Shown here in pieces: positions 2,085-45,330 of a stretch of DNA of 64,000 nt. This DNA is from Trichosphaerium sp. ATCC 40318. Its lineage: Eukaryota > Protista > Tubulinea. Within the stretch, counting starts at the first letter, position 1. Every line of letters starts with the position of its first letter. The translations under genes and the position numbers were made by a program. Below the pieces are notes generated by a model, which did not search any database, was not told the origin of the DNA, and saw nothing but the letters and a program-made list of their open reading frames with translations. The stretch spans positions 1 through 64,000 of the forward strand of contig JALMLS010000627.1 of the NCBI GenBank assembly GCA_038496445.1, read 5' to 3'.

Positions 2085-4508
2085 AACAATATTGTTTGCA
2101 ACATTGTACACTTGCTTTGGTGGATCACGACCTGTTTTGAACAAGATACTTCAATACTGCACTTTGCTGGTACGCCAACGCTTTTTGAGAAGCTGAAAAA
2201 CCTCCACCACTGGTAATCTGTGTTGCATAAGTTAGAAAAAATTACTTATGATTAAGAACGCGTACCTTGGCTTGTGTTTGAATAGAACACACAATTTCTT
2301 GTGGGTTTGGCTTGTATGGGTAATCGAGGAGAGGCAACTAGAACACAATCGTTATTATTACAATAATGATAACCACCAGTGTGCACGTACTTGTGTAGCA
2401 CCAACAGAGGTAACGTATGGACTGTCACCGGGCCAACTGGCTGAGAAAATGTTTTCGTTGTATTGTGGAGGTAGCGCTTCCATTGTGAATCCCTTGATGG
2501 AACATGCTCCAACAGATAATGTAGGAACAGCAGCACAAGAGCAGTTCTAGAACAACCATCAACTTTTAACCAACAACACAAGACGCACAGTTCCAAAGGC
2601 ATTGACACCAGCTTCAGTAGGTTTATAATAACCGCTGCAATTGCCAGCGTTTGATCCTACATTCCACATACCTTGAAATTGTGTCAAGGCACGCCCACAG
2701 TCCGTATTGTAGGTCATCCACTGACTTGCGCAAGCTACGGACTCTGTCAGACAAAAACAAAGGGGGGTAACAGAAGTGGTGCATTATTCGTACATGTAGG
2801 CTCAGCACTGAGCGCACAATCGCAAGCTTGTTGATTTGCAGGGTCGTTACAATAGCCTGAAACACCACTGAACAAATCGAATGCAGCAATCTTATCAAAG
2901 ACATTCAAATCTACGTTAGGAAGAACAAACGCAGCAGTTGCTAGGACAAAAAGAATGAGACAACAAAATAGCATTATTGGCTTTACGACAGAAAGCAAAA
3001 GGACGTACCATCAGAAACAATAAAGGAAGCACAATCACAAGAATCAAGTTCACACTCGTATCCAACGCCAGCCGAATCGGTAGGGCAATATCCATTGAGT
3101 TGGTTGGCAGCGCCTTGATCACCTAGTAGTTTTCCCCGTTGTTAGCAAAATCAAACATGTGCGACAAAGTAAGTACCTGACGATACCATGATACTGATGC
3201 CATTTACAGCTGCCATTTGCATGTACTTATCAGCACGAGCAATGTATTCCGATCCAGACTCACCGCTGGAGCACTGTCCAATCCTTAAAATGTCGTAAGC
3301 ACCGCAGACAAAAAAAAAACCACTTTGTTCTCTTTCAAAAACGAGGTTGTGATGTGACGCACAAGCACTGGTAGGCTTCTGGGAAACCGTATGAAACTGA
3401 AAAGACACGTGGTGCATCAGTGAGAGAGGAGGTCAATGACAATAGCCACTGCAATACCCACTTTTCAGGTGTTTCCCAAAACTCAGTTGTGAGGCCGTGC
3501 CCAGTTGAGGTAATGTACTAAATGTGCAGAGATTAGCCAAAAATTGATGATTGTGCAATAACAAAAGTACAAAATGTACCTGCGCGTCCAAGTCAGATTC
3601 GAGTTCGTCAGTTGGAGTGGTTACATTGATGCCATTGCCAACGTAGGCAAGAAACTGGTTGGGCTCTTCAAACAAAGATTTAAAAGCATACATGCCAGAT
3701 TCAGAATACAAATCGCCAAATGCAGCAATCCCTTGTTTAGCTTTGCCGACTGGAATCTCATACAACGCGTCTGGGATGTTGTACATACTTCTGAGTTTGT
3801 CAGGTGTAATAGGCACATCTACTGGCTGTCTGTAGCCGTTCTTTTGATCTCCAGTTCCTTTATATGCGGTCTTTGGGCCAAAACTTCTAGCCTTGAATTT
3901 GGTCTTGGCAACGTACTCGGATAAACCGTGAACGAGCGCAACTGACTCAGCGATGGCTGCTGGCACAGAAAGTGCTCCCTGTGAACAAAAAAACCGTTAA
4001 TTACAAATGCTACAAATTTTAGACGTTGGGATATGTGGTGGCGTACCTGATGGCGGATGACTACTTTTGATGTCGCCCAGCTGTTGTGGCGAACAGAAAA
4101 CAGTTTAGCTTCGAAAGCGGCTTCAACGTGAGCTACTGGCGCGTTGCACTCAAAGCCATCGAACCGTTGACTGCAAAACTCGTGTAGCGCCACATGCTCC
4201 ATCCATGTACCGACTCTTTCAAAGTGGGCAGTCGCTGGCGCAACCATTGCGTGAATTTGCTCCTGGGTAAGGAATTTTCTGTACTGAGGTGAGGATGGGT
4301 CTGACACTTTTTCGAAGGTTGCATCGAGTACGTCAGCGTTATTAAAGGGCAATAACACAGAAAAGGAAACACGAGAGCTAGGAGGAGCCCGACTAACCGC
4401 TTGCCAGCCAGCTGGTAGCGAGACATCGTTTAACTTACTCCGTGGCATCGCTAAGGTAGCGGCAATTGCAAAACAGACAGCCAACGTAAAAGTAAGCTGT
4501 AGTTTCAT
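2085..4508 (-). pseudogene. Tripeptidyl-peptidase 1/sedolisin (S53) precursor, multi-exon, apparently frameshifted and truncated at the 3' end
   Basis: Signal peptide; prodomain VSDPSSPQYRKFLT; ESDLDAQ (catalytic Glu/Asp); SVSYG; SSGD; WPGDSPYVTSVGATQ; ITSGGGFS. No RxxPD or GTS (catalytic Ser) is seen before the repeat array. Confidence 0.75.
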
Positions 4509-35167: not shown

Positions 35168-36479
35168 TCACTTTTTGAGACCGAGAAGTTCAAAAGCGGT
35201 GGCCTTCTCTTCAGCCAATTCTTTCTCTGTCGCTTCGAGTTTTGTGCGTGCGAAGTCAGATACAGCAAGTCCTAATCGAAGGTTAGTTGCGGTTAACCAT
35301 ACCGAAAAAGGCTGACGTACCTTTAACAACCGAAATTTTACCGTCTTTGATTGTGACAGGATGAGAGTACATGAGTCCCTCTTGCACGCCGTAGGATCCA
35401 TCTGAGTAGATGCCCATGCTGACCATTTCGCCCTCAGCAGTGCCTTTTGGGAAAAGAGTTAGCTACTAATGTTAAAAAAAGGGATATTGTGTCGTACCAA
35501 AGTGCCAATAGTGCACGTGGTCTACAATGGCTTTGGCAGCAGAAGCAGCAGAGCTCAATTTTCTCGCAGCGATAATAGCGGCACCACGTTGTTGTACAGT
35601 GCTTATAAATTCGCCATTGAGCCACTCTGCGTCACACAATTCAGTGGCTTTTTTATCTCCAATGACAGCGTTCGAAGCGTCTGGGTATTGTGTCTACAAA
35701 GAATATTAGAAGGTAACGCTTATAATTGATTCAACAACTGACCTTGGAGTGATTGCCCCAAATTGTGACGTTTTTAACGGTTGACACAGCGACACCTGCT
35801 TTTTTAGCGAGTTGTGCGCGCGCTCTAACAAATTTAGTTAGCGTGGAAATGGTTCTTTCGTGATTTTGCGGCTTGGAGGTACCTGTTGTGGTCGAGCATT
35901 GTAAGAGCTGTAAATTGACTGTTTGGGATTGATTCAGCGCATGTGGCGGCAATTAGAGCGTTGGTATTGGCAGGGTTACCTACTACCAAAACACGAACTG
36001 ATTTCTTGGCGTTGTCGCTGATTGCTTTGCCCTGTCCTTTGAAAATAGGCACATTTTTAGCTAACAGGTCCTTTCTGAGCATGCCCTCCCTACGAGGAAA
36101 AGCTCCTACGAGAATAGCGTAGTCGCAATCTTTGAACGCAACATTTGCGTCGGTTGTGCCAACAACATCTATTAGACAGTCAGAGAGGGAACAATAGGGA
36201 GTTAAAGACCTTGAACGAGTGGAAATGCGCAATCGGCTATTTCCATTACGACGCCTTGCATCACTTTCTCGCAGTACGGAATGTCAAGCAATTGAAGAAT
36301 TACTGGTTGGTCTTTGCCAAAAGCCTCTCCTCTAGCGACCAAAAAAATTAACGAATAGCAGATTTGGCCAGCGGCGCCACTGATGCACACTCTTATTGGT
36401 TCTTTAGTAGCCTAACACGACAAAACTGTTAAAAAAAACCTTTGTATGTTTTAAGTAAGCGCCAACGGAAGCGTACCAT
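35168..36479 (-). CDS. MDH1: Cytosolic malate dehydrogenase
   Basis: [51 protein letters not shown]; intron immediately after the ATG. Confidence 0.95.
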
Positions 36480-38107: not shown

Positions 38108-38247
38108 CCACGTGTTTACAAGAAGAGGAGCGAACGTGAATGAATGCAATATTCGGCTGTTAGGTGCAGATCTAAGCGAGAGAATTATCGGTGCTGGTAA
38201 ATGAAATTCAACTTTAAATTCAGCTGTAGGCACTAGTGGTGTCACAA

Positions 38248-41200
38248 ATGTCGAAACAAAAGGGCGTTTCGCTGTTAATACGCAATTTAACGTCACACAC
38301 CCTTAAACTAGCAGAAAAGAAAATAGATCATGGACAATGGGGTAAAGGTGGTTCTTTACAACCCCCATCGACTATGAAACCAAAGGGTTCCGTTTCTATA
38401 TCAGCAGAGCCACGCTCGTGCGTTTTTAGTATTTTGATGCTTATGTACTAAATAAGTTACAGGAGCGTACTTGGTAGTGGCCGTTGCGAAGGTAGTGTAA
38501 TTTATTCATGCTCAACGTCTTCGCCTGCTGTAAAATTCATATTCAAGTGGAAACGCTCGCGCTCTGCAAAAGCCAAGTACGTTATTACCTCTTTGGCATT
38601 CAATTAACTTTGGTATTTAAGCTTTTCGTATTCTGTTGATCCTCCAAACCAAGCGGAGACGTGGTTGTTTTCTCAAACGTCCGATAATGGTCACTCGACG
38701 GTTTACGAAATAAAACAAAAAAAGAAACCTGTAACAGGTACATCTCTTTTTCCATTTTGTGTCTGTACAGTTTATTAAGCGTCGCATTAGATATTACCAA
38801 TCCAGAGGAAGCCGAAAAAGCATTAAAACAGATTGGCGTTGAAATTAAAGAAGCGACAAAGGCACGTACCACTTCCTCTTATAAATCCTTGATTAAATGG
38901 CTCTTTAATATTAATGGATTATTCAGGCAAAAGCAGGTCTTGATAAGATGCTTGAAACCTATGTTAGGACAAACACTCAACCGCCTGATCATGTACGCAA
39001 TCAAATGGCGGAATTGGAGACGAGGTTGGAATCCTTGGCTCAAGACAAAGAGTACTTGACGCGTCTCATACAAGGTGACAGCTCGGCACCAACTACAATA
39101 GCATCAGTTGGTGATGGTGGAGCTCCAATGCGGGCTACAGTGTTGTACGACTATGATGGAAATGGCAAATCAGAGCTCGTTCTAAAGTAAGTCTTGGCAG
39201 TCACGTCTATTTTTTCCTGGTCCTAAGACTCACAACCTGTGTATAGGCAAGGTGAAGTTATCGAAGTTCTAGAGCAACACGATGACGGTTGGTGGTTAGG
39301 ATCAGCTAATGGCAAAAAGGGCTACTTCCCAGGATCATACGTGGAGATTGAGGAGGATCAAGGCGCTGCAACTATTAAGCGTGCAACTGTACTTCACGAC
39401 TACCAAGCAGACGGAGAGGTATAATTATTTTAGCACAAGGTGGATATCAACCAATAAATTAGGGCGAATTGACAATCACACAAGGAACAATTATAGAATT
39501 GTATGAATGGGATGAAAACGAGGATTGGTGGCAAGGCTCTTACGAAGGGGTTACTGGATTCTTTCCACGGACGTATGTGCAAATCGTTGAGGATGACGCC
39601 TCCGAATCCACGCCAGAAGCAGAAAGCGAACCTGCCAGCGATCAAGTATCGACAACGTCTTCGCAACCGTCTGTGTCTCATGGCAAGGACAAAGACAAAA
39701 AAGAAAAGAAGTCGAAAAGAAAGAAGGACAAGAAACACAAAAAGTCGAAACAAAAGAAATCCGAAGAGAAAAGCAGTGAGGCACCAAAGGTTGAGGAAGA
39801 ACCTCCTGCTGAGCCGCCTGCCCCTGAGCCAGTTCAAGCCAAAGTTGAGTCAGATGGCAGAGCACGTGGTGAAGTACGTCACTAGTGATGTTGTTTATGT
39901 CTAGCTTATATCTCTCTTTTATTATAGGTGCTGTATGATTACGAAAAGGATGGTGAAGGCGAATTAACTGTCCGCACTGGACAAATCATTTATTTGATAG
40001 ATTATCCTGACACCGAAGATTGGTGGGAAGTCGAGGTTGATGGCGAAGCTGGATTCATTCCTAAAACGTTTTGTAAAATTTTGGAAGATGATGCGCCAGC
40101 TGCGGCTACAGAGCATGTTGAAGCAGCAAGTGAATCCATTGAAGCTACGAACGAACCTGCAGATGTTGCCAATGAGCCTGCAGAGGAGAAATCCGAAGTC
40201 GTGGATGAAGCTGAAGTGAGCCAAGCCAGTGAACCTCCTGCAGAAGCCAGCGCTGAACCTGTTGAAGAATCAAGCGAACCTGATACTACCGACAAGACTA
40301 CAAAAGAAAACCAGCCAGAGACCAAGGCACCTGCTAAGAATCCACGTACAGCATTGGTTATCTGTGACTATACAGCAGAAGGGTCTGATGAAATTCCTCT
40401 TAAACAAGGTCATTACAGTTTGTCAGTAATGATAATTGCTTACGTAAAGTAGGCGCTAAGGTTATTGTTTACAATTGGGAAGGCGATGATTGGTGGGAAG
40501 GCGAGTCAGAGGGCCAGCATGGCTACTTTCCATGCTCGTATGTTCAACTGTCGAGCCGTGCTAAGGTACTTACTGGAACTCTGCTAACCGCACCAACACT
40601 AATTTATGTAGGTTCTGTTTGATTACAACAAAGAAGGCGAAAACGAAGTTACAGTGAAGGAAGGTGACATTGTATTGTTGAGAGAGAACGATCCTAACGA
40701 GGAATGGTGGGAAGCTGAGTTGGAAGATGGTCAAATTGGCTTTATTCCACGTACCTATTGCGAAATACTGCCTGAAGAGGATGATGTCACTCCTCCCGAT
40801 TCACAAAAAGCTCCTGTTGCTCAATCTGAAGACCCAGAACCAGAACAACAAGCACAGGAAGAGGATGTTGAGGCTCCAACTGAAGAACCAGTACGCCTTG
40901 CGTATTGTACTAGCTATTTGTCTAATTTTTCACAAGCCACAACTACCACAACATGCGGCTCCCGAGGAACCTCCACAGGCCGAACCGGAACCAAAACAAG
41001 AACTTGAAGACTCTACCAAATCAGAGCCAGAACCTGAACCTGAACCTGAACCTGAAGCTAAGGAACCTGAAGAATCTACCAAATCAGAGCCAGAAATTAA
41101 ACCTGAAGAATCTGCCGAGTCTGAGCCAGAGCAAGCAGATGAATCTACAGAAGAAACCTCCGAACCTGAACCAGAACCAAAAGAACCTGAAAAAGAAAGT

Positions 41201-42205
41201 TCAGAGGAAGAAGCACCGAAGCAAGCAGAAAAAGATGATGCAAATACAGTGTCGGCAGAGGAATTGGAGCGCGCTTCAGAGAAGATAGCAAAGCTAGAAA
41301 TGGAAATAAAAGAGCGAGAGCTCAGTGTCGAAGAGCACCGTGTTCAAATTGCGGCTTTGAAAAAGAAAATGTCGCAACAAGAGGCTGCTATCGAAGAGAA
41401 TGAAGGCAAGGTGCAAAATTTGGTAGCGACAGTCGAAGCCAAAAAACAAACAGCCAAGGAATTGCAAGATGCCAAGGAAAAACTTGAAGAACAAATAGAA
41501 GAGTTCAAGGCACAAATCGAGGAGTTACAAAAACAAAACGCAAGCGCTCAGGACAAAGAACAAGTTGAAGAGATACAACAACAATACAAAGAGAAACTCG
41601 CTCAATTAGAAAAGGAGCTCACTACCAAACTCGAACAAGAGAAAAAGGATACCGCTGCAAAAGCGGAGGAAGCAGCACGCCTGAGCAGCAAGATTGCACA
41701 GCTTGAAAAAGAAAGCGCCACAGCCTTACAAACGAAAGACGAGCAAATTAACAACTTGAAACAACAGATTGCAGATGCTGAAAAACGCAATGCTGAATTA
41801 GCTGCCAAAGAAAAAGAAATTAATGATTTGAAGGCTGCCGTTGCCAAAAAAGAAGCAGAACTGAAACAAGCCAAAACGCGCAGGTTCGGTCTCAAGAAAA
41901 TGTCACCTCGCAAAAAAGCACCACGCAGAGGGCCACTCCCAAAGAGGCCAGTGCCTAAACGACCAAAGATTCCTAACCGAGGGCTTCCAAAGAGGCCAGT
42001 ACCAAAGATGACGCGAAAGAAGAGTATTGCCCCTGAGAAAAATGCTCCACCTGTTCCTGGAGGCAGACCGGCAGCGCAACCCAAACGCTGGTCAGTAAAG
42101 AATGTGAACAATATTATACCAAAGCAAGACCGTGTGGTAAGCATGCCAGTCTCTAGCGATTTTAAAAAGCGAAGACAGTACTTTGAAACAATTGGCAAGA
42201 AGTAG
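38248..42205 (+). CDS. Aegerolysin-like beta-sandwich + HR1-like coiled coil + five SH3 domains + acidic PE linker + long coiled coil + Pro/Arg tail
   Basis: IRNLTSHTLKL..IDHGQW..PP..I.AE..GRCEGSVIY; AKAGLDKMLETY..VRNQMAE; five SH3s with xLYDY/WW/GxFPxxY motifs (39127-40770). One apparent indel near 38717 and a GC-AG intron at 38862-38926. Confidence 0.8.
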
Positions 42206-42359: not shown

Positions 42360-42740
42360 TTTAACTAAAATGTTACAAAGTTCTTGGATAAGAACAAGGA
42401 CGCCTTAAAAGATAGTCTCGTTGATATGATTCGTAAGAGTAAGGACCCTATGATCCAAAATCTACTTCAGAAAGCGAAAGTATTCCGTGGTAAACCTGTG
42501 ACAGTCGGTACACAATTCAGGGTATGATATTAGAAAAATTCTGAAGAACGCTTAAAGTTAACATATCTTTAGATGCAACTCACCAATTTGATGGAACGTA
42601 TCACATGACTGATCCACACTGGATTAGGTAGGTTTTTAACTTTGGTTTGATGGGGTATTAATATAACCTTAGGTGTATCAAACCTAACCTGTTGAGACGG
42701 CCTAATGTCTTCAACGGAGGTCAAGTACTTCAACAACTAA
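42360..42740 (+). pseudogene. Myosin motor-domain fragment retaining two introns
   Basis: FLDKNKD...TVGTQFR|MQLTNLMERI..TDPHWIR|CIKPN...FNGGQVLQQL; frameshift, upstream stop, no flanking myosin sequence. Confidence 0.88.
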
Positions 42741-45330
42741 ATTGTTCGAGCACCGTATATACACACAACATTTTCAAATAAGGCACGAGCCACAGTTTTA
42801 GACTTTTATCTGGTAGGCATACAGCTATGGTATAGTGTGTATAATAGTCAGTGCTGGAAAGAATTGAGAATTTTGAGGGTGTGAAATAGGAGTGAAATTG
42901 CGTAAAACCCACAGGGTGTACTATGCCATTGATATTGACGTAATTTACAGCAACAGGACGTATGGGATGTCTTGATAGAGCATCTGAGTCAGATTTTAAA
43001 TACGATGAATAATAGAAAGGTAAATAGACCAACGGTTCATTTTTGAATCCGGATTTTAATAGTAACTAATGCGATCTGTAGTACTCAACTTCGTGTAAAA
43101 AGAAAGAACATTTTTTTGGTTTTAGTTTACTTTTGTGTTGCCGTACACGTTCAAGAACTAATTTCAAGCTATAAATATGTTCCTCGAAAGTTTTGAAAAG
43201 ACGATAATGTAGTCAATGTATACAAGGCAATGTTGCCATTTTAAACCAGAAATAACTAGGTTTACGTACCTTTGCCAAGTTGCAAGTGCATTGGATACAC
43301 CCATAATGGGCGTTACAACCCATTCGTAGAGTCCAGATTTGTCGATAAAGGCTGTTTTCTCAACGGAGTTTCTTGCTATCTTTAGCTGATGAAACCCACT
43401 GGTAGATCCATTATTGAGAAATAGACTGAGCCTATGAGAGCTTCTAGTGCATCATCTACCCTTGGGAGTGGGTATACATCACGCTTTGTCACTGAGTTCA
43501 AAGACCTATAATCTATACAAAGTTGTAAAGTACCATCTTTCTTTTTACTAATTACAATAGGTGCTGCCCAAGGATAGTAGCTTAGCGTACCCTTTTTATA
43601 AATCGTCTGTAGTAACCAGTTTTTCGTAGACATGAAGAAGTCTTCTCTTTATCTTCATCTGCCATAGTGATTTGCCAATAACCGGATGTCTAGTTGACTG
43701 AGATAAATAACTTAGCGTCTCCAATACAATCCAAGGTGTCATCTAAGCGGTGGAATGGGATAGTTATCCCTTTTGTTATTTTGTTTAATCTACGAACCTT
43801 TTCCATCTTTCTTTGGTGCAGCCATTCGGGTTGGAATATGAAATAACATTATAGTTCGACATGTCGTTAATATGCTTTTTTTATTCTCATTAGAAGCTTT
43901 ACAGCTCTTTCTGTAGAGCTGACAAGAGCGTTAGTACCTGTCAATACGATGGCGAATTCTAGTATTGACAGTGTTGGAAGTGCCAGGTGTACTAAACAAA
44001 TGTTGATTTGATTAAATGAGCTTCAACAACTGCGCTCTTTGATCAATACTAATATGGACCAATAACATTGTGTCCTTTTGAGAAACAAGACGAGGATAAG
44101 ACAAAAGTTTTTTATTTATTTTTGGGTTTTGTTGTGCTTAAGCCTGAGCAGATAGTGTCTTCAAAGGCCTCCGTTGTTTATATGGCCAAGGTAATCATTA
44201 AATATGAGAGGCGTCAGTTACATAAGCTATTTGAGGGCACGTACTTAAGGCAGGTTTGGTTTTGTGAAGCCATTGTGAATCTGAAACTTACCCACAACAG
44301 TATAAGCACAGGAGCTGTATCAACTTGAAGAGTTGTTGGCGTAGAAGTTAGGCATAATAGTATTCCAATAAGGCCTAGACACGCTTGCCAAGGCAACAGT
44401 AATGACAGTTTGTAGTGCCAGTGAGTCGTCGTTAATAGGAGTGAAGCTGTTCTCTACCTAGTGAAGCATGGCGCTGAGATCTGTTGACATCAGCACAACA
44501 TTCAAAGAGATGACGCATTGTCGCAACAATATTACTGTACATGTTCATGCTCGTGGGAGGCAAAGTGAAGGAGCTTGTGATTAATCCAGAAGTCTGGTTA
44601 GGAAGGAACGGCATAGGTGCGTCCGAGCCAACAGGAGAAGAGACTTTGGGAAATGGTTGTAGCTCTGCATCCAACCAAGCTTGCTAGAGCTTCCATTTGG
44701 ACGTTTTCGCCATTAGGGTCAGTGTCCATGTCATCATTGACAACGTTTGGACATGGCTCAGGTACAGCGTCACCATCCTAAATGCCACCAGTACTAGGAG
44801 AAGAGTTAGAATATGAGGCCGGTGCAGTAGTGTCAAAACATTTGACGCTAGAAAAAAGTGTATTTTTGTTTGAATGAACATTATTTTGTTTGTTGTAACA
44901 AGAAAATCGAGAAGAGCTGCTGTGGCGTTGATCACTACACGTAAAGTTTTTATTTAATTTTGGTAAAACGGTGTTGATTAAAGTTCTTGCACCGAAAATT
45001 ATTGTCAAAGTTGCAGTTTTGATTGTCATGCCGTTGATAGCGTCTATTAGGCGCTATCGGCTGGTTTGTTGGCTAGGAGTTGCCAATATTTTGCATCCAG
45101 AACGTCATGAGAGAGTTGTTGATATTAGACGTCACTATGACAACGAGAATGACAGTTTGAACAACTGATTTTTACCGTTCCTCTCTATCTTCCGGTGAGG
45201 CTTCAACCGATCAAATCGTAGAATGCTACGATCAAGCAGTGTTCGAAATACTACGATCATCACAATAAAGCACAAAAATGAAGGACAGACACATATTGAG
45301 ACGTAAACTGAAAACCAGCGATGCAATTAC
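42741..45330 (-). mobile_element. Decayed Ty3/Gypsy retrotransposon remnants (two RT segments, RNase H end, integrase piece, putative gag region; upstream limit approximate)
   Basis: PWAAPIVISKKKDGTLQLCIDYRSLN..YPLPRVDD, KTAF, CLVYIDYIIVFSKTFEEH; second RT piece RLDDTLD..SGYWQI..DKEKT; DALSRHP; TDYYT..LPDK..VARALFENVVCIYG. Many stops and frameshifts. Confidence 0.85.

Follow-up and report, generated by a model that had tools for sequence, protein, structure and literature searches.

The known modules that bring multi-SH3 scaffolds to membranes are few (PX, F-BAR and PH), and a locus of the amoeba Trichosphaerium sp. ATCC 40318 raises the question of whether a toxin-type lipid-binding fold could take their place. 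The locus lies in a 64,000-nucleotide stretch of DNA (positions 1 to 64,000 of the forward strand of contig JALMLS010000627.1, assembly GCA_038496445.1; hereafter the window), in which an initial annotation made from the sequence alone had described a protein with an aegerolysin-like domain standing where an F-BAR would sit, followed by an HR1 segment, five SH3 domains, a coiled coil and a Pro-rich tail. We found an expressed scaffold gene whose product begins with a β-rich head domain (amino acids 1-133, exons 1-3), and the N-terminal β-hairpin of this head bears a faint likeness to the aegerolysin family, in sequence and register, by PDB search, profile, hhalign and pairwise alignment. On this evidence there is a roughly even chance that the head is a divergent aegerolysin/actinoporin-type β-sandwich, and the use of a toxin-type fold as a membrane anchor is plausible but unproven.

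The gene occupies 38248-42205 on the + strand and comprises 11 exons, with borders derived from the sequence, and ten introns of 44-65 nucleotides (nt). The joined exons give 3,456 nt in a single open frame of 1,151 amino acids (aa) ending at a TAG stop codon (42203-42205), and the peptides quoted in the initial annotation were all read where it had placed them. Similarity searches were run exon by exon, on single exon peptides, with the joined translation serving for frame, length, composition and motif positions. The exons are as follows.

38248-38417, + strand: exon 1 (aa 1-57), with the start codon and the first four predicted β-strands of the head domain
38463-38576, + strand: exon 2 (aa 57-95), the β-rich middle of the head (GSGRCEGSVIYS...VKFIFKW), with joints 38417>38463 and 38576>38622
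38622-38737, + strand: exon 3 (aa 95-134), the β-rich end of the head and then a Lys-rich linker, with joints 38576>38622 and 38737>38791
38791-38861, + strand: exon 4, the start of the helical segment
38927-39186, + strand: exon 5, whose first 50 codons are the rest of the helical segment
39247-39418, + strand: exon 6, from the gene model
39463-39873, + strand: exon 7, from the gene model
39928-40408, + strand: exon 8, from the gene model
40453-40565, + strand: exon 9, from the gene model
40612-40890, + strand: exon 10, from the gene model, with joint 40565>40612 present in both RNA runs
40937-42205, + strand: exon 11, with an acidic part, a heptad-rich stretch, a basic tail and the stop codon

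The alternating hydrophobic pattern of the head suggests, by eye, about 9 strands. Searching exon 1 with phmmer against 177,635 distinct PDB sequences (E≤10) returned Cry34Ab1 (4jox, '13.6 kDa insecticidal crystal protein') as the sole match, at E 1.1, with residues 7-33 of exon 1 aligned to residues 6-33 of Cry34Ab1 in the same N-terminal register. For comparison we assembled a reference alignment of nine genuine aegerolysins, drawn from gammaproteobacterial genomes by means of the Pfam model and from database relatives including two fungal proteins. A hidden Markov model (HMM) of these nine members recovered RahU, AfIP-1A, pleurotolysin A (PlyA), ostreolysin A6 (OlyA6) and bryoporin from the PDB but not Cry34Ab1, and it is therefore a second yardstick, largely separate from the Cry34Ab1 match. 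Residues 2-33 of exon 1 aligned to positions 4-35 of this HMM, scoring 5.2 bits (p about 0.001, taken as a single comparison). In Smith-Waterman alignments, 8 of the 9 aegerolysins matched exon 1 within their N-terminal columns (p 0.025 against shuffles). Exon 2 fell among the middle columns for 8 of 9, a placement collinear with that of exon 1 and not significant (p 0.1 against shuffles). An ESM Atlas search with exon 1 listed the Anemone_cytotox (actinoporin) and Aegerolysin clusters among its four top named sets, at scores of 0.82 and 0.80. Aegerolysin genes were rare in the genomes surveyed, with three genomes over the Pfam cut-off among 190 of one gammaproteobacterial family and 401 sampled from its order; one of the three is annotated as Neptunomonas.

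A substantial body of results weighs against an aegerolysin head. No score reached a family threshold in any aegerolysin comparison, and the ESM Atlas scores, being below 0.9, are leads only by the tool's own rating. Aligning exon 1 to the nine-member alignment with hhalign gave the same register at a probability of 0.5%, which is not significant, and exons 2 and 3 gave nothing by hhalign and are without significant likeness to the family. Exon 3 likewise found nothing by Smith-Waterman against the nine aegerolysins (p 0.7), as did helical exon 4, included as a control, and against PDB sequences exons 2 and 3 matched only chance Ig/FN3 strands. The Pfam Aegerolysin model PF06355 (gathering score 22 bits) had no match among the peptides of exons 1, 2 and 3 at E≤10 and none in the organism's own 70-Mb genome in six frames, a search that was silent everywhere, controls included. 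The invariant residues of the reference alignment, GR, SGTxG and W..P (the GR...SGTxG and W.xPW core motifs), are largely missing: reading by eye across the first joint (...AEPRS, then SVLGSGRCEG...) and at the end of exon 2 (...FIFKWKRS), we found R, S, SG, EG and one W retained and the rest lost. Finally, all of the positive signals come from the same 32 residues (2-33) that had first drawn notice, and they are therefore not independent of the hypothesis.

The missing Pfam match is nevertheless weak evidence, because the head is cut by two introns and was searched by exon; intron 1 falls within the most conserved block of the family (GRS before it, ..SGTEG after it), so exon-by-exon searching is handicapped exactly there. 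The aegerolysin pattern that the initial annotation had read across exons 1-3 thus stands in part: the likeness is genuine, if statistically weak, over residues 2-33 (Cry34Ab1, the HMM and the ESM clusters), whereas exons 2 and 3 are silent and no family-level score is reached.

Close relatives of the head were likewise absent from the collections searched. An exhaustive phmmer search of 1.84 billion protein representatives with exon 1 gave zero matches at E≤1e-3, not even to the gene's own product, a 56-aa query of this kind being able to reveal fairly close relatives only; the protein is therefore absent from the public sets searched. Exons 1 and 3 had no paralogues besides the gene itself in the organism's 70-Mb genome, where one match at E 0.24 looked like chance, and a word-index search with exon 1 yielded no candidates among proteins of 31-98 aa. 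Exon 2 retrieved only short-fragment clusters in an ESM Atlas feature search, which were uninformative. The multi-SH3 scaffold is apparently lineage-specific, and the initial annotation, which had not recognised the architecture, was right to find it unfamiliar.

Behind the head lies the segment that had been called HR1, a family of antiparallel two-helix fingers that bind Rho-family GTPases.

38791-39076, + strand: helical hairpin region, possibly HR1 (exon 4 and the first 50 codons of exon 5, aa about 134-207), containing intron 4

Against the TOCA-type HR1 model (PF25610, HR1_TOCA), exon 5 scored 13.5 bits (E 0.095; cut-off 27), with residues 2-42 aligned to profile positions 36-77 of 90; the match starts at profile position 36, and the missing first helix would therefore lie in exon 4. 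Ordinary coiled-coil open reading frames (ORFs) elsewhere in the genome score higher with this model, at 18.4 and 16.1 bits, and its matches in the six-frame genome search were plain coiled coils. The classical HR1 model PF02185 (cut-off 33.1 bits) had no match in the exon peptides or in the six-frame 70-Mb genome, and a PDB sequence search with exon 4 and the helical part of exon 5 returned designed helical repeats, DivIVA and SNAP-25 in place of any HR1 structure. The HR1 call therefore keeps a half-domain match in the right register but loses its score, which is under the cut-off and within coiled-coil noise. We regard an HR1 identity for this segment as doubtful, if a real possibility.

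These results leave one serious alternative, to which we would give a little under an even chance: that the head is a β domain peculiar to this lineage, with no relationship to aegerolysins, for instance an Ig-like or other small sandwich serving protein-protein contact, that the helical segment is a short coiled coil or linker, and that the likeness to Cry34 is a chance match of one β-hairpin. An E value of 1.1 for the Cry34Ab1 match would be in keeping with chance, as would the absence of a Pfam match, the restriction of exons 2 and 3 to chance Ig/FN3 strands and the HR1 score within coiled-coil noise; the head is without relatives, and therefore no conservation stands behind any assignment, this one included. 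However, it is improbable that the best chance match among 177,635 PDB sequences would land on one of about nine that belong to the aegerolysin family, and in the same register, and both the separate aegerolysin HMM and the language-model search point to aegerolysins as well.

Whatever its fold, the head belongs to the scaffold. Among Logan contigs from two public runs (X1 and X2) that carry the label of this organism, 6 of the 10 introns (1, 2, 3, 4, 5 and 9) are skipped exactly at the modelled borders, and these contigs are therefore derived from RNA. The joint of exons 1 and 2 was seen in X2, that of exons 2 and 3 in X1, those of exons 3, 4 and 5 in one X1 contig and that of exons 5 and 6 in X1 (39186>39247), the linkage being pieced together from overlapping 150-300-nt contigs and not read from a single full-length molecule. 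Exons 1-3 are therefore joined to the helical and SH3 exons in transcripts, as the initial annotation had supposed, and the scaffold gene is real and expressed. RNA contigs of both runs start at 38231/38233, 15-17 nt 5' of the ATG, and another covers 41982-42199 within the tail-coding part; runs X3 and X10 contained no contig from the gene. The assembly has one copy each of exons 1 and 3.

Nine of the ten introns are GT-AG (44-60 nt), and intron 4 is GC-AG (38862-38926, 65 nt; GCACGT...TTCAG). A GT donor four bases downstream, at 38866, with the next exon starting at 38934 or 38937, was considered and excluded: the RNA contig skips 65 nt, and intron 4 can therefore only be GC-AG at 38862-38926. 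Splicing there joins ...EIKEATK to AKAGLDKMLETY..., so that the X1 contig spanning exons 3-5 agrees with exactly the peptide that had been claimed. Upstream of the ATG the + strand contains only short ORFs that are not coding-like by eye, the larger upstream ORFs being on the minus strand. Together with contigs that start so close to the ATG, this makes it unlikely that an F-BAR exon is hidden upstream. That the model is an artefact, with exons 1-3 forming a separate small gene for a free aegerolysin-like protein and the SH3 scaffold beginning downstream, is very improbable: no single long read crosses the whole transcript and the linkage passes through the overlapping contigs, but the joints from exon 1 to exon 6 were all seen, the frame is open through every one of them and no stop follows exon 3.

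The body of the protein is that of a multi-SH3 scaffold. Pfam models PF00018, PF07653 and PF14604, run on the exon peptides, detected five canonical SH3 domains above the gathering score (E 8e-7 to 7e-14), in agreement with the initial count. Introns split 3 of the 5, and the ALYDY-like, WW and G-[FY]-[FI]-P motifs, read from the translation, are kept in all five; in the PDB sequence search their nearest solved chains were Grb2, spectrin, intersectin and CIN85. The linkers between the SH3 domains are charged and of low complexity. From the first SH3 domain to the stop codon, the features are as follows.

39131-39352, + strand: SH3 domain 1 (SH3_2/SH3_9, E 8e-11 on the exon 6 part), split by intron 5 (39187-39246)
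39377-39588, + strand: SH3 domain 2 (SH3_2, E 9e-9 on the exon 7 part), split by intron 6 (39419-39462)
39589-39873, + strand: disordered linker, acidic, then Lys-rich, then Pro/Glu-rich, with low-complexity matches only in Pfam
39928-40083, + strand: SH3 domain 3 (SH3_1, E 7e-14), whole in exon 8, with Grb2, spectrin, intersectin and CIN85 as nearest PDB chains
40348-40550, + strand: SH3 domain 4 (a second SH3_1 stretch in exon 8; SH3_9, E 8e-7 on exon 9), split by intron 8 (40409-40452)
40612-40770, + strand: SH3 domain 5 (SH3_1, E 3e-12), whole in exon 10
40771-41236, + strand: acidic region rich in Pro and Glu (net charge -29 over the opening 100 aa of exon 11), containing intron 10 (40891-40936)
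41237-41902, + strand: proline-free heptad-rich stretch of about 215 aa, found with a crude purpose-made heptad score; matches to Pfam coiled-coil families are weak
41903-42205, + strand: basic Pro-rich tail (net charge +29; 19 Pro in 107 aa) and stop codon

Across every exon peptide, Pfam gave SH3 and low-complexity matches only, with nothing for exons 1-4; neither a PX domain nor FCH/F-BAR was matched in any exon peptide, and the head is β-rich rather than helical. The 215-aa heptad-rich stretch is a probable coiled coil, for dimerisation, which bears out the coiled coil proposed earlier. At 41181-41674 the coiled-coil part is represented in runs X1 and X2 both by near-identical contigs and by others that, over 185-300 nt, show 16-17 differences and two 3-nt gaps; the divergent contigs could stem from another strain, a second allele or a paralogous gene for a coiled coil. 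The tail contains three class I SH3-ligand motifs of the form [RK]xxPxxP (RPVPKRP, RGLPKRP and KNAPPVP) and one class II PxxPxR motif (PKIPNR). Its earlier description as PxxPxR-rich is therefore loosely right: the tail is Pro-rich and carries SH3 ligands, but these are mostly of the other class.

Direct reading of the N terminus revealed no signal-peptide-like hydrophobic stretch, as the initial annotation had stated. Aegerolysins are found outside cells even though they have no signal peptide (PMC9505663), which would permit a head that is a component of a secreted or pore-forming toxin, as in the classical two-component aegerolysins, instead of an intracellular anchor. In this protein, however, the head is covalently continuous with five SH3 domains, a coiled coil and SH3 ligands, the hallmarks of a cytosolic scaffold, and we consider the toxin reading highly unlikely.

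The reading that we favour, at even odds, is that the gene product is a cytosolic scaffold whose head is a very divergent aegerolysin/Cry34-type sandwich docking the protein on a membrane lipid, followed by the SH3 domains, coiled coil and tail. The head would dock on a membrane, through a particular lipid if it is aegerolysin-like, and would thereby play the role of PX in Tks5 or of F-BAR in CIP4/TOCA. At the docking site the five SH3 domains could concentrate proline-rich actin or endocytic regulators, and the coiled coil may pair two chains. The basic tail, with its class I PxxP motifs, might turn back onto the SH3 domains or the acidic stretch of the same protein and act as an autoinhibitory latch; alternatively, it might bind acidic lipids and add electrostatic affinity for the membrane. 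The weakest link is the helical segment, which as an HR1-like hairpin would receive the signal of a Rho-family GTPase. Coupling to Rho GTPases and membrane targeting are pure inference. The fuller proposal, that this amoeba co-opted an aegerolysin/Cry34 fold as the head that targets a cytosolic HR1-like/five-SH3/coiled-coil scaffold to membranes, functionally replacing the PX or F-BAR modules found in scaffolds of animals and fungi, is tentative, and we would put it well short of an even chance.

If the head is an aegerolysin-type lipid sensor, it would constitute a new membrane-reading module for multi-SH3 scaffolds and the first domain of the aegerolysin type to be coupled to actin or endocytic signalling, and it would place the fold of a pore-forming-toxin partner at work inside the cell. 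The isolated head might then find use as a new lipid probe, a role that OlyA6 and EryA already fill (PMC9505663). If it is merely an orphan domain, the gene encodes a lineage-specific scaffold, mainly of interest for amoeboid cell biology. As predicted from the exon sequences, the scaffold architecture is in either case unrecorded in the collections searched.

The surroundings of the gene in the window are mixed. Just 180 nt past the scaffold stop codon, at 42384-42527 on the + strand, an isolated 47-aa ORF resembles the middle of a myosin motor (...KDALKDSLVDMIRKSKDPMIQNLLQKAKVFRGKPVTVGTQF...), with no obvious motor exons upstream of it; it may be either a fragment or part of a gene with other exons. 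Broken ORFs at 43164-43633 on the - strand, read by eye, carry a reverse-transcriptase motif of the Ty3/gypsy kind (YRSLNSVTKRDVYPLPRVDDALEAL) and constitute retrotransposon debris just downstream. On the other side, an exon at 35837-36232 (- strand) encodes part of a malate dehydrogenase of the cytosolic type; over about 100 aa it shares 56-68% identity with malate dehydrogenase genes of many proteobacteria, actinobacteria and other bacteria. Farther away, at 3433-4508 (- strand), lie two overlapping ORFs, one with a signal-peptide-like start and a pro-kumamolisin/sedolisin-like activation region and the other with a peptidase-like continuation (by eye).

Among known scaffolds, Tks5/FISH (SH3PXD2A), Tks4 and p47phox begin with a PX domain that binds lipid and continue with two to five SH3 domains and stretches rich in proline. 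The Trichosphaerium scaffold shares with Tks5/FISH a small N-terminal module that is putatively membrane-binding, five SH3 domains, long disordered linkers and internal SH3-ligand motifs that would permit autoinhibition; it has no PX, however, and possesses a helical hairpin, a long coiled coil and a basic tail that are additions to the Tks5/FISH layout, and the two have no sequence relationship past generic SH3. The TOCA family (CIP4, FBP17 and TOCA-1, and Bzz1 in yeast) is built as F-BAR, HR1 and SH3. The order of membrane module, helical hairpin and SH3 is similar, as is the weak half-domain PF25610 match in its register, but the amoeba protein has no F-BAR/FCH, five SH3 domains against one or two in TOCA proteins, and an HR1 score far under the cut-off. 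CIN85/CD2AP proteins have three SH3 domains, a Pro-rich region and a C-terminal coiled coil. Here the likeness lies in the multiple SH3 domains, the Pro-rich motifs and the C-terminal coiled coil, with CIN85 SH3 domains among the PDB matches; these proteins, however, have no N-terminal head, and the number of SH3 domains and the order of the Pro-rich and coiled-coil parts differ. With PX and F-BAR absent, the scaffold belongs to none of the Tks5, CIN85/CD2AP and TOCA families. Its closest analogue in layout is Tks5/FISH, with PX and five SH3 domains, and not CIP4/FBP17, and the analogy is one of layout only.

On the side of the head, the comparison is with the aegerolysin family (PF06355: OlyA6, PlyA, RahU, AfIP-1A and Cry34Ab1), which resembles it in a length of about 130 aa, a β-rich pattern, the lack of a signal peptide and the N-terminal hairpin. 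The family is characterised by an actinoporin-like β-sandwich and by binding to particular membrane lipids, SM/cholesterol and CPE among them. Known aegerolysins are free-standing proteins of 13-20 kDa, often with a MACPF or Cry35 partner; they are without signal peptides, bind specific lipids, and occur widely among bacteria and fungi but rarely among protozoa (PMC9505663). The present domain, in contrast, is the head of a 1,151-aa scaffold, and the family motifs are largely not conserved in it. In a full-text search of the literature, aegerolysin together with SH3 occurred only in PMC3710099, and aegerolysin together with amoeba gave nothing relevant. That paper describes apicomplexan HEPN proteins (MAL13P1.321 type) in which N-terminal aegerolysin domains are fused to other domains (PMC3710099), a precedent for an aegerolysin at the N terminus of a larger multidomain eukaryotic protein. 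The apicomplexan proteins differ in having HEPN partners, two aegerolysin copies and a proposed action on host cells, as opposed to the cytoskeletal scaffold that the Trichosphaerium gene appears to encode.

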